Counted from the whole stretch's first letter, positions 79 to 33,953 are shown. The stretch: 63,652 bases of DNA, filler included, from Reticulomyxa filosa (GCA_000512085.1; 22 parts of 22 records of this genome joined end to end with filler, not necessarily neighbours in it); one strand, 5' to 3'. Made by a program: numbers and translations. Notes: generated by a model from the sequence alone, not told the origin.

Positions 79-882
79 TTAAAAAACTTTAAACACACGA
101 AAACGTAACATCACGGTGACGATAATCTGCTCGCCCGTCATTTTGGCTTGGAACTGAATGCCACTGCTCCCCAGCTGCTGCATGGCGATCCATTTGTACG
201 AGTCTTCGGACGGAGCAAAAGTGGTGGCGTAAGGGTCGGACAAGGCCAATGTGTTGCCACCTCTTTGGTATGGTCCATGGTCAAAATACTTTGCATAATA
301 GCCATATGCCCACATCGATGGGAGCTGTAGGGAATCCGTAGTAAACGTATATGCCCAGCTGGACCATTCACTTACATTGTTGGCTCGCTCCATCACCACG
401 GTTTGTGTTGATTCGTATTCCGTATGTGATATTATCGTCACGCACGTGTCTCGCATTCCGTACCCACACATTGCCATTGGAATGCCTGCCTTCTCGTCGT
501 ATACCCACTCTTCATGAGCGGCCCATTGTTGGGTCTTTCATATTGTTGTCAATTTTTTTTTTTTTTTCACCATTTTTTATTAATTTTTGGCACTATTTTA
601 TTAACAAAAGGTTATTTAATAGCTTTTAACACAATACTAAACTTCCACTACTTGCCAAATTATTGTATAACAATCAAACATATTTGTATTCCCAAATCCA
701 ACGGCCAAATATCGGTCTCGAATACCGCTCATTGTTATTGTCGTTTTGTTCGTCTCGTCATTTATTTCGACACTGTAAGAAAACTCATTTGCACTTCCCA
801 CTGTTACTGAGGCGGTCAAGATTTTTCCAAATGACGTCTGCCACAAAAATAGGCAAATGGTTCCTATTGCTAACCAAACCAT
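79..882 (-). CDS. Secreted DOMON-domain protein (spliced; 3' end probably continues off the contig)
   Basis: Signal-peptide-like MVWLAIGTICLFLW; DOMON-like YLAVGFGNTNMFDCYTII; after an intron, MWAYGYYAKYFDHGPYQRG (WAYG...H...RG pattern). Confidence 0.65.
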
Positions 883-1527
883 TTTCTGGGAAGCTCACTA
901 CCAAAGGTACAACTCTCAGTTTGGAGACAGACTATCTTTTACTAGTTTAACGTCTGCTTATCAAAGTCAATTTACTATATAACATTTTTCGATTTAGAAG
1001 TACTGTTACCACAAATATGATGACAACTATAGGTCATTTTAACTAATTTTCAACTGCGCCTTATTTGTATACAAGTAATTTCTTGCACCGAAAAATTTCG
1101 CTACATTTAAAAGAAGAAAAGGCAATAACTAAAAATTGACGGAATTTTATTTTCTTGAACGATAATCATTCAAGTCAGCACAAACAAACTTAATGAAATC
1201 AAGGAATAAAACAATTAACTAATTTTTACAAATAAGTCCTATGCTGATCAGTGGCAAATAGTTTACTTTTTTTATTTGAATAAGATTTGATAAAAATTTT
1301 TTAAAATGGATTTATTGTTATCAGAAAATTGTGAAAGTAAGTTACTATTTGTTCAATATAAATGTAACCATTTGTATTATTTTTCGGTGCATTCATCATG
1401 AGCTATTTTGCCAATTACTAGCGTCAACAAAATTTTTTACTCAATGCATTCGGCCATTTTTTAAGAATTGTAAATTACCAACAAATATCTTATCACGTAC
1501 AAACCAAAGCAAATGGACAACTTAAGA

Positions 1528-3201
1528 ATGCGATGGGAACAACTTTCAAAAGTTAGCCTCCGTTTTTATATTTCTTACAAAAAGTGTTTTTGACAATAAC
1601 ATGTTTTGACTCCAGGACAATCAGTCAAACTCCACCTCGACTGGCGCTGAACGAACATTTTCAACACACCCCAAAGACAAAGTACCAACGTGTTTTGAAA
1701 GCAATACGGACCGAGAAGGTTTGCACAGTGTTTGCATCACAAATTTACTTAAAGATAAATCTCTATTGTTTGTCTATAATGTATAGAATTGTTAGAATGG
1801 ATCGAAAACGTTCTTCAATTGTCACAAACTGAAAACAAAAGATTAGAAAAAGAAGTAAGTGTGAATAATTTTTTTTGGAAAAAAGCATTTAAGTTTTTCC
1901 AAATGCAATATGAGACATAAAAAAAATAAAAAGAATGCGGAATGGAAAATGACACATGAGCTGAAATCTTTAAAGTACAGCAAAGAACTAAGTGAAATGA
2001 AAGAGGAATTGGAAGAATTAAAAAGAACACACAAAATACTCCAACAAACATTACAAACGGAACGTCACAAGTTGAAAGAATATCAATACCTGTCGGACAA
2101 ACAAACCAAAGATTACATTTCACAATCGAATCAATATATCAAAGACTTGGAAGCGCTCTCACAACAGCTGAGTGAAGCAAAGGAGCTAAATAATCAATAC
2201 AAAGTTCAAATCGATGAATACAACAATGAAAATTTGCAATTAAAACAACAAGCAAACGAAATGAAAGAGCATTTCGATGTTATTCATGCAAGCATTGACC
2301 AGATAGTGCAACAAGAAAAAGACAGTGACAACACAAATGCCGACAATCAATCTCTTGATGCCGGGAATGTCTTTGACAAAATCAAGTATTTAGAGGTATT
2401 TATGCATCAATCAATTCAGACAAATCAAGAATGCAAACATTATAAAGGTTTAGTTGTCCACTTTTTTTGAAACACCCCTTTTTAACGCTTACTACAAAAT
2501 TTATTGGTTATGACATAATGATTAAACTTACAGAATTGCTGAAGTGCATCCCTGAAAAACTGTTTCAAATAAACGAAGAACAAAGCATTTTTTACGAAGA
2601 AGCAATGAACCATTTAACTGTGTATACAACCAAAATGGAGCATCTGTATGCTCAAAATGACACATTGCAAACGTTTACGCATAACTCGAAGCAGCATACT
2701 TTTCAGTTGGAAACTGAAAATAAAAAATTAGCTCAAGATTTGTCACTTTTGCAGAAGCGTTACGACGAAGATATAAACAATTTGCAGCACGAATTGGAGG
2801 AGATTATGACCAAATTAGCTCCTAAAGATTTTAGTTTATCTGAATTGCTTCAGCATTTGTCTCACAATATCCACGCCATGCAAACTCAAACACAACTAAT
2901 GGAATACAGATGGTATCACTTGCGACAAACCCCCGCAAAAGAATGGATCGATCAAATCGAAAATGATATGCAAAGTGAAAACAAACGCATCAACGTAAAA
3001 ATTTGTGAAGTCTTTGCACAATAAAACTTTTAATTACTTTCTAAAATATAGTTGATGCTTGCTCGTAAATAGATTTCCGAATCAAATCTCCAAGGAAAAC
3101 AACGTTCAAACTTTGTTATAAATACCAATGAAAAAGCAGGAAAAATAAGAATTGAATCAACAGCGAAGAACGAGGCAACTGCAGATAATCCAGAACTGTG
3201 A
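1528..3201 (+). CDS. Multi-exon coiled-coil protein of unknown function
   Basis: Long E/K/Q/L heptad-rich ORFs 1910-2470 and 2467-3024 separated by GT-AG introns; stop TGA at 3199-3201; start uncertain. Confidence 0.6.
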
Positions 3202-22020: not shown

Positions 22021-22662
<642 letters not shown>

Positions 22663-23302
22663 TTATATTATATATATGTATGTATATACATTCCATAAGT
22701 ATGTGTATGTGTTCCGTCCTCAAAAAGGCTACAACAAAATTACGTCGTACCAGTTTAGCCAAACAATGGGAACAAGTGCAGAAAAATGTAGTTAAAGTGA
22801 ATGAAGCGAGAATCAATGCAAACAACGTGCTTTATCAAATCCAACTTCAACATGATGATTTGAACTTTAACCGAACTAAAACTCTTTCCTTTTGTCCTAA
22901 GCTTGTTTGTACTACATGTATCTTCTTCAAAAGAAATTCAGAAATAAAAAAAGACAACAAAGACATGTTGTCTACAGTTTAGGACAAGAGACAGACAACA
23001 ACAAATACTTTTGAATTTCCTTGTCTTAAACGGATTCTATTCTTTTGGCACATAGAAATTGCTGTTTTTAATTTTTTCCCTGAAACAACTGCAGTAATCT
23101 TACGACTATTTCGTTAATAATGTAATGTTACATTGTTTGTGTAACATTCAATACATACCGCATAAAATAGATTGTTTGTCTCTTTTTAAGTCTTTTCAAA
23201 TGTAACATCAACCCCAAATGTTTACTGCAATTTCATAAATTGGTCCTGCCAAGATTCTACTGGATATCACCTTTGATGAGCTTTGACTTAAATACTGACG
23301 AA

Positions 23303-25201
23303 ATGGACTATTCAAGACAACAGTTTGTGGGTCATAGCGTCCAGACTGAGCGATATGTGCAGCCGTCAAATGCTGCGTCAGCAGTATCATCCTGGCCATT
23401 GTCAGGGAACACAGCGAGCACTTCAGACTCTAACTCGCATTTAAATTTTTTGTTGACTAACTTTTCGTCTTGTGGTTACTTGACACCTCGAGATCCAGAA
23501 GGTGCAGTCCAGTGCATTTCCAGCATGGAGGGGATGTGGAAGCCACGTTTCAAATACCCCCACAAATTTTTGTCGAACACATTACAAGGTACAATTGAAA
23601 ACGAGTTGATCACTAAAATTTTTTAGAAACAGGAGGGAAAGAGGGGGGGGGCATTTCTAGTTTCATTTTTTTAAAAAAAAATTGTTCCTAGTGTGACTCA
23701 TTGTAAAGATGTTTAAAATGAATTAGGTGCAGCGGTGGTATGTTATGACGAGAAAGATGGCACGTCACGATGTGTGAAAGTAGGCATAAGAAGTTTGGTG
23801 GAGAAGCAGAAATCGGTGAAGCAAAGCTCAATATCAGAGAATTTTTTACGAGAGCAGTTGTTGCTGAAGAAGATATGCGAGATGAAAGACTGTCCAAATA
23901 CAATTAGTAAATACATTTGCCATTGGGAAAGCAATTTGTTTTATTACTTGGCCACTGAGTATTGTGCCGGGGGAAATCTGTTTCATTACATGGTCCATGT
24001 TTTGCACGCTCATCCAAAATTCCAACCAAGTTCTTTTTTTGTAAACAATTAGCCCCTTTTTTTTTTTATTAAAAAAAAAAAATTGAATTAGATCGAACTA
24101 AATTGGAGGAGGGAAAAAAAAAAAACCATTAACTGGTTTTGATTAGATTTGCGCCAACAATTGGTAATGTCAGCCAATCCGTTTGCATATTGCCCAAAGG
24201 AGGATACGTACTTGCGTTTGCAAATGATACAACACGTATTTGGACAAATCGTATCAACAGTCGCGTGGCTGCATAGCAAACATATATGTCATTTGGACTT
24301 GTCTTTGGAAAACGTGTTAATTCGAAATGAAGATATCTTCCACCCCCAAATCCAAATAATCGATTTCGGGGTCAGCATTGACTTTAGCAACAACAATGAT
24401 AGTAATCACAACGAAGGGGAAGAAGAAAGACAAGAACAAGAATCCAATGCAAATACGAATACAAGTGCGAATACAAATGCAAATAGTGGAATGATTGGCA
24501 GTAGCAATGCGGAAACGAGACGAAAGAGAAAGTCCATATTTGAAATGAACTGCGACAAACATGGGAATATCCGTCATTGCGAAAACGTTGGAAAGCCAGG
24601 ATATAAGGCGTTTGAAGTGCGCATGAGCGATGAAACACGACGGAAGATGCGTGTCGCAGAGATATCAGAAAAACGTGCTCAACTGTTGCTGGCACGCACG
24701 CAGGTGCAACAACAGCATGGAGCGAATGAATCAATGGAGATGGTGATTCACATGTATGACATGCTGTTACGGGATGGGATTAAGGACAGTTATAACCCTT
24801 TTAAGGCGGACATTTGGACTTTAGGCGTCATTCTTTACTTGCTATTGTTTTGCCGCTATCCTTTTCGCCATGCTGATTTGGATGATGACATGTTTCTTGT
24901 TATTTTACAAAAGCGCTTGCTGCAGTATTTGTTAGAGCAAAAAGCACTTTGCTGGATAACTTTTGAAACGTTTGATGTCTTGAACCAAATGTTGCAACCC
25001 GAATTTACACGCATTAACACCACGCAGTTGTCCGTGCATCCGTTTTGTTCATTTCCCAATAGTGTACAGTCAACAAATAACGCTGACAAGGCAAAAAAAG
25101 AAACACGTTTTCCAAAATATCAAAAAAAACAAAGAAAACGTGCTTCTTGGGATCAATCACGTGATTACTACTCTTCCAACAGCTGCTCATCAGCAATCTA
25201 A
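23303..25201 (+). CDS. Ser/Thr protein kinase (CAMK-like, HxDLSLEN type) with large inserts
   Basis: NTLQG Gly-loop variant, CVK, EYCAGGNLF, HLDLSLEN, DFG, VGKPGYKAFE, KADIWTLGVILY, QPEFTRI. Confidence 0.85.
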
Positions 25202-26198
25202 TCATAGAATAAAATATGACACGAACAAAACATCCATTTTGACAACTCCGCTTTTACATTATTGCAGTTCAAATCAAACCACAGTGGTTCGACATTCCAC
25301 AGCAATGGCCTCCTCCATTCTCCAACAGCCATCGAGTTCAATTGCTAGTCAATTTTTTAGCTAGTAAAAAAGTTTAGAAATGATGGAACACGTTGAGCTC
25401 TTAGTTCAAAAAGCTAATAGTTTTTTTGTTTATTCTCTTTTTCTGTGTCTTTATTTTTGAAATCTTTGAAAAAAGTATTTAGCCTTTTTTTTGTACCTCC
25501 TATGTGCTATATGTTGAAGACAACCCTTCTCATTTTTTTTTTTATGTTGTTATTTTAATTTTATCTTTATACTATTTCTATTTTTTGTAAGATCAAAAAT
25601 ATGAAAGAGAAGGGCTCAGATAAGAGAAAATCAAGAAAATTCTGAAAAATTTTAAATTTGATGTTTTATTTTGTGTTAATAATTTTTACTTCCAAAAATA
25701 GTTTCTTTTTTTCCTTTGTTTTGAGTGGTTTTCAATCAAACATAATTGGGTTGGTTGTGCATTTGTTATGGGTAGCCCAGTTGTTGGGTCTTGTACGTTC
25801 CTTTTTGTTGTGTCTTTTCGTATCTTTTTTTTTCTTTTTGTTAATTTTGTAAGTTGAAAGACTTTTAGTATGTTTTTAACATTTGATCTGGTGGTGTGGA
25901 TAATGATAATTTAAATTTCTTTACTATCATTCCAATATGTATTTTTTTATTTCATCTCTGTTTACTTTGCAGACTATTAATTTTTATGGAAGAACAAATT
26001 TTTGTAAATGAAAACCAAATTATCAAATTAAAGGATGGCAGTCACAATCAATTAAAACTCAATTGATGTGATCTAATCTTACTCTGTTTAAGATATTTAG
26101 AAAAAAACGTACAGTAAACCCAATCTTTCTCTTTAAACAATTACTCATCAAAACAAGAACAAACACAAACATTCTTGAACAATGATGAACTTGCTTCT

Positions 26199-28412
26199 CT
26201 AAAGATCAAGACTATTGACCACTACATCCTCTCCCAAATTTGCTATAATTTTTCTCCATTGTTCAACTGATTTCTTCAAATTTGTAATACAATAATTTTC
26301 CTCCCAAGAACACAATATCACAAAACAATAATTAACCCAATCAGGGCCAAATTCCAACCATAAATTGCCTAATATTAAATCCATCACACCTCGATAGTTC
26401 AAATAGCAGCTACTCGACAATGATACTTCTTTGTTTTCCGAAACCTTCTCAAATCTTTTATAGTTATATTATTTAATATTGTTATCCCTTGTACATTTAT
26501 GTTTATTTTTTCAACAAAAAAGATCAAAGACTTGTGTTTTTGGCAATTTTGCAAATAGGATCTTGCAGAGCGCATATGTCCATAAATTTCATCATAACAA
26601 GCCTCGTGTCCTCCATCCACAAATACTTTCCATTGGAGTTTTTTGTCACAACTTATGTCTGGAAATATGAAAGCGTATGTGCAATATTGTGCAAATACAT
26701 TAATATAATCATCGTTTTCTTGCATTGAGGCATTTGCCAACCCTTTGTTTCTTTTTACAAACAATTTGCTTTTGATTAAAAAATCTTCTAAATTGTTGCA
26801 AATTTGTGACGAATTCTTTGGGAAGCGTTGATGGAGTCGTTTGAGATCCAGTACTTCTTGCACAAATTGAGAAGTGGGAATCACCTTTCGATTTTCGAAC
26901 ACCGTTGCTTTCTTTTGGCGATGGCTCACTTGTGTGTACAGCACACATTCATCGTCTCCTCTTCGAGATATCATTATAGGTCGAATTGCAAAGTCTTGCA
27001 ATACATTCAAATACTTTGAACTTCGATTTTTCAAAATCGATAAAAGATGTTCATATTCCACTGTTCCATTCCATTCCAAATTTTTTTTTTTAAAAGTATT
27101 AATAGTTACAAAAAAAAAAAAAAAAATCAAACCTAAAGTTAAATGAATATTTTTCTGAAAAGGAAACAAATTCCTGGACAATCGATTGAAATTTGGTTCG
27201 CTTGTCGTGTTGTTTATCCACACCCAAATAAGCAAAGATGTCTTTCACATCGTGGTAAGCACTGTTGCTTAGCTTCGTGGACTCTTTCACTGAGGCATTT
27301 GTGTCTTTTTCAATTACTGCAAAAGACACAATCTCTTGTTCTTTCCTCGAAGTTTTCCCACTTCTTTCACAACTCCATTGCTGTGTCCATGCGTTGAAAC
27401 ATATATTGGTGGCGTTGAAATATCCGACTCACTTTTGATTTCGTCCCCGTTGCATTCACTTTACATAAAAAAACACGACAGAGTTGTAAAGAGTGAAACC
27501 ATAATTTTTTTCTTTTTCTTATCGCTTATCACTTTACCCAAAAAAAAAAAAAAGGTTCAAAACTCAATCGTAGCAACAAGTCTTGGAGTGTCGAGTTGCA
27601 TCGGGGTCAAATTGCGCTTGTGATGTAACGTTTCAATCTTATTACAGTTAGGATGATCTGACTCATCTTCACTGTTTTTTTGATTGGTTAACAATTGCAT
27701 AATTGGTTGCGAATGAATCGGGGTGATAACGAATTCGACCTCACTGCGAGGTGTTTCAATGGTACTATCCACTTCGCAAATAAGATCGGTATTGCAAACC
27801 AGTTGTTGAGGTTTCACTCGCGGGATCTGCTTGACATTGTCGTTGTGATCCTGCTCCTCTTTTCCTCCTCCTCTTCCTCTTCCTCTTCTTCTTCTTCATT
27901 AAATCCATTATTCGTGGCAACACATGACTCGGTTGCAGCTTTGTTACATCGTTCCAATTGTGCACTTTCGCTTCGGCCATTGGGTGTTTCAAAGAATTGC
28001 CCACTTTGCAAGTATTGACCACAAGTGGAACACGTGTTTTTAGAAACTGTTTCTGATTGGTTGCAAATTTGACGACTCATCTTAGCAAACATAAAAAAAA
28101 AACAATTGCAAACATGCCAAAATTTTTCTTTATAGAATTAACATCTTTTCATTGAAGAAAACTTACTTGTGGAGATATTTTACCAGGAACAAGTAGCTCA
28201 TTTTGTTTGAGAAGCTCTCTGTACTCGCGAAAAACAATGATCAAAGAATCTTCTAATTGAACTACTTTCGCTTTAACATTGGCTAACTCAGCTTGCAAGT
28301 TCTTAGCTGTTTCTCGCTCTGTCAGTAACAAAGACACCAACTGGGAGCTGTTTAGCTTCTCTAAGGACACAACATTAGAGGTTGCATTTGGATCTCGCTT
28401 GCGATTATCCAT
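26199..28412 (-). CDS. Multi-exon hypothetical protein with N-terminal coiled coil and poly-Glu tract
   Basis: Chain of minus-strand ORFs (28149-28412, 27814-28092, 27557-27817, 26399-27235, 26199-26420) separated by introns. Confidence 0.55.
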
Positions 28413-28809
28413 ATTTCTCGCAACTTACGGTTTTTTTTCAACTCCAATAAAACGAAAAACGTTTGATCTTTTTCTTTACAACTTACCACAAACCCCTTGT
28501 CAAAAAAACTTACTGTGAAATATACTTTTAAAGATCGATCCAGATGTCATTAGCTTTTTGCACGTTATTACTATTACAATTGATACATACTACTTTAAGC
28601 TTTGCTCTCACTGCATGTAATAGTCTATTATTCTCGCGTTTGTAAGAATAGCGATTATATCACGTACCTCCCTGAGAAAAAAAGAATTAATTTGGCTAAC
28701 ACTTTGTGAAGTTCACATTCGGGAACAAGCAAGCTGTCAGGAAAAATATCCTTGTGCATCAACAAGTAATAGATTCAATTTCTTGTCCCTCTTGTGAGAC
28801 TGTGTTAAG

Positions 28810-31020
28810 ATGACCCAAGCCCGTGTTGTCCATGATTATAATGCAGACGGTGACGGCCAACTCTCGATAGGAAAAGGCGATACAGTTACCATTATCGGCG
28901 ACGTGACTCCCGAGAACTGGGTGCTTGCGAGAAATGCGTTTTGTATTTATTTTCTATTTTGTCTGTTATTTAATTTTTCGACACTGTTGTATTAATCTTT
29001 AATTCGTGCATAATCCACATATGGAAAAACGAGAAGAGGCCCCTGTTGAAACTCAAACTTTGATGTTTGGAAAAAAAACAGAAAAGGAGATGAAGGGTAC
29101 ATTCCTTCAGGATACTACAAAGAACTTGCCGGGAAAAAGCCAGTGAAAGGGCCTCCGCCATTGCCTCCGAAAACAGGAGGTAAGGCAACAACAGGTGGCA
29201 CCACAGAAACAGCTGGAGAACGACCTCAATGGGAAGCAGTGAAACCGGTAAACGTCTCATCAGCGAAGAAATCCTCAAAGTCCCAGGACGATGGCGTCCT
29301 GATGGAGGGCAATGACACGTATAACCTGTTCGCGTATCAAATGGAATGGTCGGCCCTCTCGTTGACCTTTGTCAATGCCTTGATATCCTTTTTCAATGGA
29401 ACGGCCCAATCTACTTTTTATTGGATCATTCCGCCCATCTTTGCTCTTACCATTGGCGGTATTGTTGTCATGACCGAAGGCTTTGCCAGAGAAAGGTATT
29501 GGTTTTGATTTTCTTCATTCTTTTTTTGTTTTTTCGGGGAAGGGGGGGGGGGGGGAAAAATAAATTTTTTGGATACCAATAATTCCAATCAAAAACGCAA
29601 ACGTTTTTTTTGCGGATCAACGATTATTTAAAACTGATAAGCAAAGAAGAGGAAGCGAAAAAAAAAAAAAGTATTTAAAATCTTTTTTTTTTGCAATGAC
29701 CCCTGTTTTACAGGATGTAATTAAACTTTGGGAGAGTCAGCAAAAAAAAATGTTGAGAAATTTTAAAAAAAAAAAGCAAACAAATAACAAGGGGAAAAAA
29801 GTATACGTGCTCCTAAAAAAAAGTGCATTGCGTAAAAGAACATTTTATGAGGGGGGGAGGAAAAAAAAAAAGAAAGGGAGACACGTGGACGGACAAAATC
29901 TTAAACTAAGGAGGACAAAAAAGAAAAAAAAAATTTGTTTTTTTGGTTGTGGTGAAATATAGAATGGGTCCTAAAGGTCGTATAGCAGCATTTTCTGTGT
30001 TGGGAGTTTTGATGGCATTATCATGGCCTTTTGGATGGGCTGGATGTGGTGCGTGCTTCGCGGCAGTCGGAGTCAATTATCTTGTGATACGATACAATTG
30101 CAAACCGCTGACGTCAGCAATCACAGATGATTGGAGAAGCCAGTTCATGAATGGATGCGACTCGTGGACTCCTGGAAGAATGGTGTTTGTCGCGTTTGTT
30201 GTTATTATAAATATCGTATCTATTGCTTGGGGATTTATCAATGGTTACAACCAAGCAGCATCAATCACCGATAATCCTGATGACGCCGAAATTAAGTTTG
30301 GTTTTTCATTATTGTCACATAACAGAAAAAAATTTTGTGCTTGTGTGATTTGCATAAATTGCTGCATAGACCACGAACCTATGGTGTAGCATTAGGCTTT
30401 GGCAGGGCTGTGACAATAGATATTGCATTGATGTTGTTATTAGCTTGTTATGGCTGTTTCTCTCGTCAAGCGCAGAAACATCAACGAGATCGCACGGCAG
30501 ATACTTGGCTGGGTAGATGCTGTATTTATTTGAGTGATGAAGAAGGAAGAAGACATTGCCATCGCGTTTTGGCCTACAGTACCGTTTTGTTTGCATATTT
30601 GCACTCAATATCGATGTATTATTCTTATGAGTCATCAGGTACGTTTAATGTTAATTGTTATAAAGGAGATATCCACACATTTCATGTCGTAATAGCGCTT
30701 CAATTTAAACACAATATTGTTGTGTCAAAATAGGTGTGCAACGTACATTTGTGTCAATTTTTGGAATTGAAACTGTGGTAACTGGACTTGTGGCGTTCAT
30801 ATTGTTGTCGGTGGTGATTGGTTCTGCAAATCAAACGATCCTCAAGCAAAATTCAAAATTGTTTTGGCAAACTCATTCTATCCCTGCTGTTGTGATGATA
30901 TTCTTGTTGTTCTTGCATGGACCTAAAGGCAGAGGCCAATGGTATTATATGCCTGTGGTGGGACCATTTGTATTGTACGCTATTGATGTTGGATTACGAT
31001 ATATGACCGGTGACAAGTGA
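28810..31020 (+). CDS. SH3 + proline-rich + p22phox-like membrane block + NOX/ferric-reductase bis-heme membrane domain fusion (~476 aa), lacking the FAD/NADPH domain
   Basis: Exons 28810-28937, 29082-29495, 29963-30295, 30370-30638 and 30734-31020 splice in frame (1431 nt). SH3 VVHDYNA...W...GYIPSGY; PPPLPPK; HRVLAYSTVLFAYLH; FWQTH...LHG; VVGPFVLYAIDVGLR. Confidence 0.8.
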
Positions 31021-31686
31021 TTAAGACAAGGATCTTTTTTTGAAAAGAAAAGCGTTCTGTATAGAACAACAAGCTTTGTCTTGATTGTAATTTTTTTTTT
31101 TTTTAAATGAGATATGGCATATCTTATGTGTACTATGTGCACTCTTAAAACAAATGTTTATTTTGAAGATTTTTTTGAATGACTGAACGATTTGCTAATA
31201 TCAGTATCCAAATCACATTTCAGTGTAATATCTAAATTTGGTTTTATCATTATTCTGTATTGGGATATATAATTTAAAAAAATTAAATGGTGAGCGACAT
31301 ACGGAACTAAAAATGTCGTAAAAAAAAGTCCTTTCGGGAAAATTTTTTCAGTTGTTAGAAATTTCGAGAAAAAGAAATGTGACAATAACTGTCGAAGTTA
31401 GTAACGTGTCTTGGAAAAATTCTAAGGATCCAATGGAATTTGGATAAAGTTAAATATATCTCTTTTCATGAATATAACCGATGCTTTTAAATATTTTGAA
31501 GACAGAATGAACAAGTTGATTTTTCAGGTCTATTCGGCAATTCAACAGGGGCATTAGTGACAATTGGGGAAAAAAAAGGCATATAATATTGTGTACATAA
31601 GTGCAATAATAATAGTGATAAAAACAAAAAAACAATGATAATTGAATATAAAAATCCCAAAAGACTTGGGGAAAAAAAGGTGTTTA

Positions 31687-33768
31687 TTAGACTGGAGCCT
31701 TATTTCCAGTCACGACCATATTTTTCAACATGTCATTTTGCATGCGAAGATCTTTGATCTGTTCAGTGGTTAACACAATCGTAATATTGACAAACAAAAA
31801 AAAATTATTTTATTGTTTATCTTCAAATTGAAAGCTACATTTATGAGATAAAATAATCAAACAAAAAGAGATCATTAACCTCTTTGACCAATACTTTTCG
31901 TTGAGTCTTTAGTACTTTAATTTGCTGCTGTAATAATTCCTTATTACTTGAAGGAGCTTTAAGAAAATAGAAAAGAAACAACAAAAAAAAGCAAACACAC
32001 TCGCAGTCTAAATATGTATAAATATGAACAACATACGCACATACTTTGTTTGGCAAGGTCAGACTGAGTTTGTTCCAGTTTGGCTTCCAACGACTTAATT
32101 TTCTCTTTGCTGAATTGCAGCTCTTTTTCCAAAGACTCGATAGTGAACCGTTGTTGTTCCAAAAGCCCTTGCATGTGGGCCATCTGTTGCCTTTGGACTT
32201 CCATTTGCTGCAGCAGCACCTGTTGCGATTGCTGCACTTTCAGCTGTTCTTGCTGCTTCTGTTTCACTCGCTCTTGCGCCTGCGCTTGATTCTGCGGAGG
32301 CAACTCACTAAACTGCTGCTGCAACATTTGGAACTGGTCTCGAATCATTGTGTTTTGTTCCACTTTTTCGCGCAGTTTCTGTTGCGTTGTTTTCAGTCTT
32401 TGTTCCATCTGTCCGATTTGTTGTTGCATTTCTTTCAGCTTCGCTACCAATTGTCTTTTCTCGGACACGTACTTCATCTGCAAGTTCTTGTATTTGCTCT
32501 CTTCCGCATCTTTATTTTGCACACATTACATATACATACATACATACATACATACATTTATATAAGCCAATTTTTGAAAACATTGTAAAATATAACAATT
32601 TTTTTTTTTTGGAAAAGACCTTGTAGTTTTTGTAATTGCTCTTGAGAAAGCTTCAATTCTTCAACGATTTTGGCATTTCCATGTTCGTCTGTGCCAAGGT
32701 ACTTTTCAATGTCGGACATGGACATGAGCGACTCCTCACGTGACCGCGACGAGGCATGCGATATGCTGCGCCTGGAAAATGATGACGAAGAGGAGTGTTG
32801 TCTCATCGTCTTTTTTTTTTTTGGATTGACACCCACATACATATTTGTACATATACATATATACATATATATATGTATATGTACAAATATGTACAAAAGA
32901 AATGAACCAAATAGGTAAAAGGATTGAAAGTTTGAATACCTGCAGACCTGATAAATAGGGGAAGAGGAGTCAAGTTGGCTTTGAGCAGGTTCATGTCTAT
33001 TATGTTCAGCAGGAAGTCGAACGACAGTAGAAGAGGTAGTGGAGAAGTTTTCAATGACTTTTCGTTTCAAAGCGCTCATCCATTCCGGAGTCGTGTTGGC
33101 GTGGTTCGCGTACGAATTTGAGCTTTGCGAATGAAGTCTGTGTTTGAAAAGGTTGGAGTCTGACTTTCCATTGGCATTGGACTTGTTCAACAGGACAGGT
33201 GACAACTTGTGTGGAGAAGAGCCACTTGTTTGCTGTTGATGTTGTTGTTGTCCAAGCAAAGACGATGACGACTTAATTTGTTGTCGCATTTGTAGCTTTC
33301 GCGAAACGGCTTTTTTGGCAGTGTCGGACAAGTGTTCGAAGGCAAGCGACCCATTGTTATTTGTGGTGATGTCACGTCTGATCACAGACTGCGCAGCAGA
33401 TGCAGATACGGTGGACACTTCAGTCTTCGTCTCGTCTCTTCCGTCTGAGCTTGAGGCGACCACAGGCCCAACAATTCGTCGTCATTGTCGCTGCTCGAAA
33501 ACCGACTGTGTCCGAGGCCGATCACTGTCGTCGCTATCAATTGGTCGTTGTTTTCATTGTCATTATTGCCTCCATTGCCATTGGCTTCGACCAAAGAGTC
33601 GTGGTCGCTATTTTGCGAAGGCAATCGCATGATCTTTTCCTCCTCTTCCTCTTCTTCACTTATCTTGGCTCTGAGCATTGGGACAGGTCTCGTTGCTGGT
33701 ACGATACTATCTGTCAAATCTATCCGCAACACCACTTTCACATTTCCTTCTTCAAACTCGGCCAAGCG

Positions 33769-33809
<41 letters not shown>

Positions 33810-33953
33810 GGGGGGTAAATATTTATTGGTTCATTCATCCATTCGATTTGTTTATCGTGTAGAAAAAAAAATCAACCTTTCTAAAAAAAAAAAAAAAAAT
33901 GAACTGTTTGAGAACCCCAAGCTCGTGTTCGACTCTGGCTTTGTATTGAATCC
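31687..33953 (-). CDS. Multi-exon protein with Ser-rich region and Gln-rich C-terminal coiled coil (5' incomplete)
   Basis: ORFs 33382-33765, 32558-33463, 31959-32522 plus terminal exons IKVLKTQRKVLVKEV / IKDLRMQNDML; stop at 31687. Confidence 0.6.

Follow-up and report, generated by a model that had tools for sequence, protein, structure and literature searches.

What does a gene do that encodes the membrane part of an NADPH oxidase (NOX) and ends where the dehydrogenase part should begin? This question is raised by a gene at positions 28810–31020, plus strand, of a 63,652-nucleotide stretch of Reticulomyxa filosa DNA (GCA_000512085.1; 22 parts joined with filler), here called the window. 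Its predicted product is a single chain of an SH3 domain, a proline-rich SH3-ligand motif (PxxP), a block of four transmembrane (TM) helices and a six-TM ferric reductase domain (FRD). We consider it probable, as the best explanation, that this chain conducts electrons as the membrane half of a two-component oxidase or reductase and has a built-in p22phox-type partner, its electron donor acting in trans and being recruited or gated by SH3 and PxxP. An earlier note on the locus had read from the DNA five GT-AG exons, an N-terminal SH3 domain, the ligand motif PPPLPPK, a block of about four helices ahead of a six-TM domain, and two histidine pairs with an FWQTH motif. We recovered all of these, as follows.

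28810–28937, plus strand: exon 1, with the start codon, the first 42.7 codons and the N-terminal three quarters of the SH3 domain; GT donor at 28938
28938–29081, plus strand: intron 1, 144 nt; the start of the deposited RFI_01291 falls inside it
29082–29495, plus strand: exon 2, with the SH3 end (GYIPSGYY), PxxPxK, a disordered Ser/Thr/Lys-rich linker, the invariant D-x-Y-x-L-F-A-Y-Q-x-E-W motif and TM helices 1 and 2 of the block
29152–29172, plus strand: PPPLPPK (residues 67–73), a class II-type PxxPxK SH3-ligand motif about nine residues past the SH3 domain, read from the sequence
29496–29962, plus strand: intron 2, 467 nt, rich in poly-G and poly-A; part of it is translated in RFI_01291
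29963–30295, plus strand: exon 3, one uninterrupted open reading frame (ORF) with the end of the four-helix block, a linker and FRD TM1
30296–30369, plus strand: intron 3, 74 nt
30370–30638, plus strand: exon 4, with FRD TM2 (GFGR, with the Arg54 equivalent), the Cys-rich polybasic B loop and TM3 with H356 and H370
30639–30733, plus strand: intron 4, 95 nt
30734–31020, plus strand: exon 5, with FRD TM4, loop D, TM5 with H429 and H443, TM6 (VVGPFVLYAIDVGLRY) and the stop codon TGA at 31018–31020

The five segments join into a coding sequence of 1431 nt, without internal stop, for 476 residues and the TGA. All four introns start with GT and end with AG. We searched the exons separately and used the joined translation for the frame check, the alignment and the dN/dS analysis. 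Exon 1 was collinear with the SH3 domain of all homologues. At junctions 1, 3 and 4 the spliced model aligned gap-free with every homologue, and at junction 2 it matched the closest relative, P0001, exactly; distant members have a loop insertion of 6–7 residues there. As the model is collinear with all homologues, including those on intronless contigs, we conclude that it is the correct reading and not a chance one. The deposited RFI_01291 (P0009, 532 aa) covers the gene and ends at the same stop. It starts inside intron 1 and hence has no SH3 domain, and it contains some 80 Lys-rich residues that are a spurious translation of intron 2. This mis-annotation is likely due to the homopolymer richness of intron 2, and the predicted 476-residue, five-exon protein corrects it. 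The homopolymers of intron 2, i.e., a run of about 15 G and many A8–A13 runs, are typical of the repeat-laden R. filosa genome.

In NOX enzymes, the FAD/NADPH dehydrogenase domain starts at the point at which the predicted chain stops. The chain ends six residues (YMTGDK) past the Arg closing TM6 (VVGPFVLYAIDVGLRY, then MTGDK and TGA), where the earlier note had counted five. Pfam FAD_binding_8 and NAD_binding_6 did not match the protein, and no HPF[TS] or GxGxxP motif was present in the six frames of the 11,933-bp piece that carries the gene (22021–33953). We do not call the protein a NOX because the defining dehydrogenase domain is absent from the chain.

The six-TM domain itself belongs to the Ferric_reduct family (PF01794). 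Exon 5 matched the Pfam profile with an E-value of 4e-4, and exons 4 and 5 each gave a weak match when scanned separately. Candidate heme ligands are H356 (30560–30562) and H370 (30602–30604) on TM3 and H429 (30874–30876) and H443 (30916–30918) on TM5, with i,i+14 spacing in both pairs and the FWQTH motif present. All four histidines are invariant in an alignment of eight family FRDs (A4) and, from this conservation, should bind two b-type hemes. The first canonical TM3 histidine is kept in all members, and the family therefore lacks the mark of the YedZ/MsrQ/STEAP short forms (Arg at this position, one heme). Of the NOX signature His101, His119, Thr178 and Gly179 (NOX2 numbering; PMC3591440, Zhang et al.), three equivalents are kept, namely His101, Thr178 (as Thr or Ser) and Gly179, the latter two found as VTG in the R. 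filosa protein. The Arg54 equivalent lies in an invariant FGR.

Within the family, the TM5 histidines are spaced i,i+14 in the R. filosa protein, P0001, P0007, P0008, P0010 and P0011 and i,i+13 in P0003 and P0014. NOX2 has i,i+13 in its second pair, in contrast to the R. filosa protein. One further member, L009 (82–1485, plus strand; outside A4), has Gln in place of the inner-heme TM5 histidine (LWKMAQY for LFxQTH), a substitution reported for YedZ/STEAP-type one-heme proteins (PMC3591440). The B loop between TM2 and TM3 (30440–30560) is Cys-rich and polybasic in all members, e.g., CCSKCKDKIMDKCKCCQKCKGK in P0003, and could be a palmitoylation site, a metal site or a partner-docking surface.

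Profile and fold comparisons both place the domain next to NOX enzymes, in line with the earlier note, which had proposed a comparison of the C-terminal half with Ferric_reduct and NOX2. The family FRD profile, run against PDB sequences, found DUOX1, NOX2, the csNOX5 TM domain and NOX5 with E-values of 1e-4 to 1e-1. It aligned to NOX2 residues 177–231 and 265–287, and the family ends at the last turn of TM6. Folds and complexes were computed on P0001, the closest full-length relative (70% identical), in place of the R. filosa protein. The AF2 model of P0001 (pLDDT 70) has four helices (residues ~124–229), including H124–157 and H160–182 in the part corresponding to exon 2, followed by six more. 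In Foldseek, the whole 481-residue model found SH3 and NOX chains only. Its structural matches were as follows.

NOX5: 17.4, 2.7 Å, 185
DUOX1: 16.9, 3.1 Å, 204
NOX2 (model residues 255–481 on NOX2 8–293): 16.5, 3.5 Å, 209
STEAP: about 13, 4.2–4.5 Å, 189–202

The FRD is hence NOX-like in fold and in most signatures; reduction of O2 is not assured. Its extracellular loops are short. In other FRDs, short extracellular loops go with an open outer heme and a less strict choice of acceptor (PMC11031084).

The block ahead of the FRD consists of four TM helices with both ends cytosolic. From this helix count, the SH3 domain and PxxP would be cytosolic and the FRD would have the NOX orientation. Folded alone with eight sequences, the block reached a pLDDT of 88 and a pTM of 0.80. 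When its model was compared by Foldseek with 350,542 PDB chains, 8gz3_A ranked first, 7u8g_B second and 8kei_A fourth. All three are p22phox, the small helical subunit of NOX2 complexes (heavy chains 8gz3_B, 7u8g_A and 8kei_B), and were matched with TM-scores of 0.53–0.59 over the full chain, the Foldseek E-values being just 0.08–0.27.

We then predicted a complex of the FRD (P0001:242–481), two hemes and the block (P0001:120–249), with three controls and in three runs. The ipSAE was 0.70, compared with 0.00 for the best of the three controls; in a calibration on ligand-free, mainly microbial complexes, 51 of 78 solved complexes and 2 of 108 mismatched pairs scored at least as high. The three runs agreed in at least 80% of contacts, with a partner pLDDT of at least 78. 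Confident contacts comprised block residues 3–37 (helix 1) and 89–100 (helix 4) and FRD residues 132–143 (TM3), 151–181 (TM4) and 184–192 (loop D and the start of TM5). The interface of NOX2 with p22phox is formed by TM3-TM4-TM5 of NOX2 and TM1 and TM4 of p22phox (PMC9568551, Noreng et al.). There, Trp9 and Gln13 of p22phox bond the TXXT motif (191–194) at the cytosolic end of NOX2 TM4 (PMC9568551). In the family profile alignment, G-S-A-N in FRD TM4 takes exactly the TXXT position of NOX1–4, and in the prediction it is contacted by the invariant Gln and Trp of YQxEW at the start of helix 1. The block is thus confidently predicted to dock by helices 1 and 4 on TM3-TM4-TM5 of the FRD, i.e., on the face used by p22phox on NOX2. 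As a caveat, invariant residues lie at this interface in 4 of 10 cases for the bundle and 4 of 29 for the FRD, which is about chance and no enrichment.

On the cytosolic side, Pfam SH3_1 matched exon 1 alone (28810–28935) with an E-value of 2.3e-7. The SH3 assignment (PF00018) is further supported by the conserved ligand-binding Tyr, Trp, Pro and Tyr. A PxxP is found at the position equivalent to PPPLPPK in nearly all family members, with P0011 as the exception. In P0011 (465 aa, ENA contig), which has no PxxP, the SH3 domain is also shortened and degraded (no Trp, no GYIP). This may be a co-loss of SH3 and PxxP or an artefact of assembly or gene calling; as a single case it hints that the two elements work together.

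The same architecture occurs elsewhere, as the earlier note had asked. With exon 3 alone as the query, HMMER found among 1.84 billion representatives five proteins of 378–499 residues aligned over the fusion junction (P0001, P0003, P0006, P0007 and P0008) and a 298-residue fragment, P0002. P0001 has 481 residues and is 73% identical in exon 3. The fusion point of block and FRD lies within this single exon, and the relatives of 481–499 residues align across it (phmmer). Two further hits, P0004 and P0005 (707 and 3077 aa), look spurious, with multi-stretch matches and, for P0004, low-complexity Pfam noise. P0010, P0011, L008 and L009 came to light in a profile search and a metagenome scan, and P0014 in a cluster look-up. 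There are hence about ten distinct relatives with the same architecture and early stop. They come from EukProt transcriptomes of Bolivina argentea and Nonionella stella and otherwise from JGI and TARA contigs; to date, Foraminifera are the only organisms to which the family has been traced, the other members being on marine and environmental contigs without assignment. Complete members have SH3, PxxP (P0011 excepted), four helices and Ferric_reduct, and full-length members stop 5–10 residues past TM6. On L001, the 1524-nt contig of P0001, the gene is intronless and forms one ORF. The TARA scaffold L002 carries all parts of the architecture in one genomic ORF; behind it, AT-rich DNA without long ORF extends for more than 800 bp to the next called gene, which lies on the opposite strand. 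On three other contigs, 100–200 nt of AT-rich sequence lie past the stop. Between the R. filosa coding sequence and L001 (70% amino-acid identity), dN/dS was 0.12 overall, 0.15 in the SH3 domain, 0.26 in the linker, 0.05 in the four-helix block and 0.10 in the FRD; these values are rough because dS was saturated. The sequence comparison argues for a conserved family under purifying selection and for a functional gene, not a truncated pseudogene.

The remainder of the 11.9-kb piece holds the following features.

22390–22650, minus strand: MCM fragment with the MCM P-loop (Pfam MCM, E 1e-17)
23735–25201, plus strand: protein kinase, in two or more exons, with an insert rich in Asn and Ser (Pkinase, E 7e-19)
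26399–27235, minus strand: ORF without family
31021–31690, no strand: about 670 bp of AT-rich DNA that separate the gene from the convergent coiled-coil gene, without long ORF and without HPFT or GxGxxP in any frame
31690–33463, minus strand: convergent coiled-coil gene

None of the other genes in this piece is redox-related. The spacer length and the lack of dehydrogenase motifs agree with the earlier note. On L002, a gene upstream of the family member (848–2770, plus strand) encodes 640 residues with a weak 2OG-Fe(II) oxygenase match; it has no counterpart adjoining the R. filosa copy.

How could such a protein work? We propose that the four-helix bundle serves as a built-in p22phox-type stabilizing partner of the heme domain, and that the hemes would carry electrons across the membrane. 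The reductant would act in trans, because no dehydrogenase domain is found here or in any relative. The inner heme would be reduced by a cytosolic donor from another gene, for which a flavoprotein is the likeliest candidate. In NOX enzymes, loop D, which is conserved here, and the B loop, which is Cys-rich and polybasic here, face the dehydrogenase; both would be suitable surfaces for a separate flavoprotein to dock on. The SH3/PxxP module may recruit or gate the donor or may form an autoinhibitory clamp. At the other side of the membrane, the uncapped outer heme would pass electrons to O2 or to another extracellular acceptor.

Several observations speak against this proposal or parts of it. 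For the p22phox-type partner, PF05038 (p22phox/CYBA) matched neither the block in eight members, at E-values up to 10, nor the whole proteins, and the family profile found no p22phox chain among PDB sequences. In VIA, soluble copper-storage proteins and Rogdi tied with p22phox, and four-helix bundles are common. A C-terminal cytosolic proline-rich region in the style of p22phox was not found in the protein; PxxP is N-terminal to the bundle, the C-terminus of which continues into FRD TM1. The docking score is weakened by the covalent tether that joins block and FRD anyway; ipSAE is moreover a confidence that the model assigns to itself, and it may go back to the NOX2–p22phox structures already solved. 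Heme binding is deduced from the conserved histidines only. The His119 equivalent is Met or Ala in the family, and superoxide production is doubtful because this residue, thought to aid O2 reduction, is absent. No electron donor was identified, and no R. filosa RNA run is listed, so that expression and splicing in this species are predictions. Other searches with the block gave as little: it had no other meaningful match in Pfam, phmmer with exons 2 and 3 against PDB sequences returned chance matches only, and in the ESM Atlas the feature searches of the bundle gave no usable match and the shape search only unrelated bundles. A word-indexed homologue search with exon 2 found nothing and has little weight, as its candidates were limited to proteins of 75–240 residues. 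The local p22phox look-alikes MEW and TIGGIV were reproduced by no alignment tool and do not lie collinear with p22phox, and we gave them no weight. The p22phox-like block of the earlier note therefore stands in shape (Foldseek) and in predicted docking and fails in sequence (PF05038, PDB profile). The same holds for its interpretation as a whole: architecture, conservation, NOX-like fold and p22phox-like shape support it, the sequence link to p22phox does not, and a donor in trans and a switch formed by SH3/PxxP are what we infer.

From the failed PF05038 test we place the protein outside the p22phox family, although it probably works like the NOX2–p22phox core. That the block is nevertheless a true, highly diverged p22phox homologue, which would make the protein part of a split NADPH oxidase in eukaryotes, namely its membrane half, with a separate dehydrogenase recruited via SH3/PxxP, seems to us rather unlikely. 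Somewhat more plausible, and the main rival to a two-component system, albeit still doubtful, is a stand-alone di-heme reductase for iron, copper or another extracellular acceptor. The block would then be a lineage-specific extension of no p22phox ancestry, a small reductant such as ascorbate or free reduced flavin would supply the electrons, as in cytochrome b561 or a flavin-fed FRD, and SH3/PxxP would serve localization, e.g., at the reticulopodial cytoskeleton. This would fit a block that shows no p22phox sequence similarity and that generic bundles in VIA resemble as well as p22phox does. It would also fit the missing His119 equivalent, the short extracellular loops, which elsewhere accompany an accessible outer heme and a range of acceptors (PMC11031084), and the Gln of L009 at the inner TM5 position, as in YedZ/STEAP-type proteins.

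An electron-conducting role would be lost altogether if the protein were a non-catalytic partner or decoy that acts, via SH3/PxxP and its TM domain, as companion, scaffold or inhibitor of a canonical full-length NOX in the same cell. SH3 and PxxP are typical adaptor modules, and the absent dehydrogenase domain would find an explanation. However, the four histidines and the equivalents of Arg54 and Thr178/Gly179 are nearly invariant and under strong purifying selection, which is hard to explain for a redox-dead protein, and we hold this role to be improbable. Scarcely credible is a truncated pseudogene or an incomplete model with dehydrogenase exons elsewhere, as might be suspected from a GT at 31010–31011, just ahead of the stop, and from the lack of a listed R. 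filosa RNA run. About ten distinct relatives share the stop; among them are sequences from transcriptomes and intronless genomic ORFs with AT-rich non-coding DNA behind them. Moreover, dN/dS is 0.12, no frame of the 11.9-kb piece contains a dehydrogenase motif, and the gene that follows is convergent. We hence regard a pseudogene or missed exons as almost excluded.

Closest in plan is NOX2 (CYBB) with p22phox (CYBA). In both systems the bis-heme domain has six TM helices and bears its four histidines on TM3 and TM5. Both also have the equivalents of Arg54 and Thr178/Gly179, the TM6 motif xxGPxxLY, a four-helix TM partner with helices 1 and 4 on TM3-TM4-TM5 (predicted in our case) and a proline-rich SH3 ligand on the cytosolic tail of the partner. 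In contrast to NOX2/p22phox, the R. filosa protein unites partner and heme domain in one polypeptide and lacks the FAD/NADPH dehydrogenase domain and the His119 equivalent. Its extracellular loops are short and uncapped, its PxxP lies N-terminal to the bundle and beside an SH3 domain on the same chain, and it shares no sequence similarity with p22phox. The SH3-PxxP pair recalls the organizers p47phox and NOXO1, whose SH3 domains bind the proline-rich region of p22phox at the cytosolic face of a NOX-type cytochrome. Here, SH3 domain and candidate ligand are on the cytochrome chain itself, and there is no PX domain and no tandem SH3.

A dehydrogenase outside the chain is known from E. coli MsrQ (YedZ), an FRD membrane protein that obtains electrons from the separate flavin reductase Fre (PMC11031084). 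MsrQ is bacterial, has no SH3, PxxP or extra four-helix bundle, and carries Arg for the first canonical histidine (PMC3591440). The present family is eukaryotic and NOX-like and has kept the four histidines (in L009, one inner TM5 histidine is Gln). STEAP2–4 differ by an N-terminal NADPH-binding oxidoreductase domain and one heme; the R. filosa protein lacks that domain, has four histidines, and its FRD is closer to NOX. Additional TM elements or small TM partners that stabilize the FRD at the TM3–TM5 face are also found in DUOX1/DUOXA1, where the M0 helix of DUOX1 sits at the p22phox site (PMC9568551), and in NoxA/NoxB with NoxD/Pls1, NoxD being the fungal p22phox homologue (PMC9421330). These systems, unlike the present one, keep the dehydrogenase in the catalytic chain and have no SH3 and PxxP on the membrane subunit.

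The R. filosa protein is a new variant within the FRD/NOX superfamily. This architecture did not turn up in our literature search on NOX, ferric reductase or p22phox of Foraminifera or Rhizaria. According to previous surveys, all full-length eukaryotic FRE and NOX have a dehydrogenase domain, short FRD forms with all four histidines are few and bacterial, and the origin of p22phox is unknown (PMC3591440, Zhang et al.). Moreover, no paralogues of p22phox have been reported (PMC9568551, Noreng et al.), and p22phox, p47phox and p67phox are confined to opisthokonts (PMC9421330, Massari et al.). A rhizarian family with a NOX-type heme wire, a dehydrogenase lost or never present, and a p22phox-shaped partner together with SH3/PxxP in one chain bears on these statements. 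If the block were a true p22phox homologue, it would be the first paralogue or fusion form reported, and the p22phox–NOX partnership with its SH3/PxxP control would extend beyond opisthokonts into Rhizaria. The protein provides a natural model, in a single chain, of the cytochrome b558 core and may be what corresponds in eukaryotes to the split MsrQ/Fre system of bacteria. It is also a candidate for cell-surface redox chemistry in Foraminifera, among them inhabitants of oxic-anoxic boundaries.

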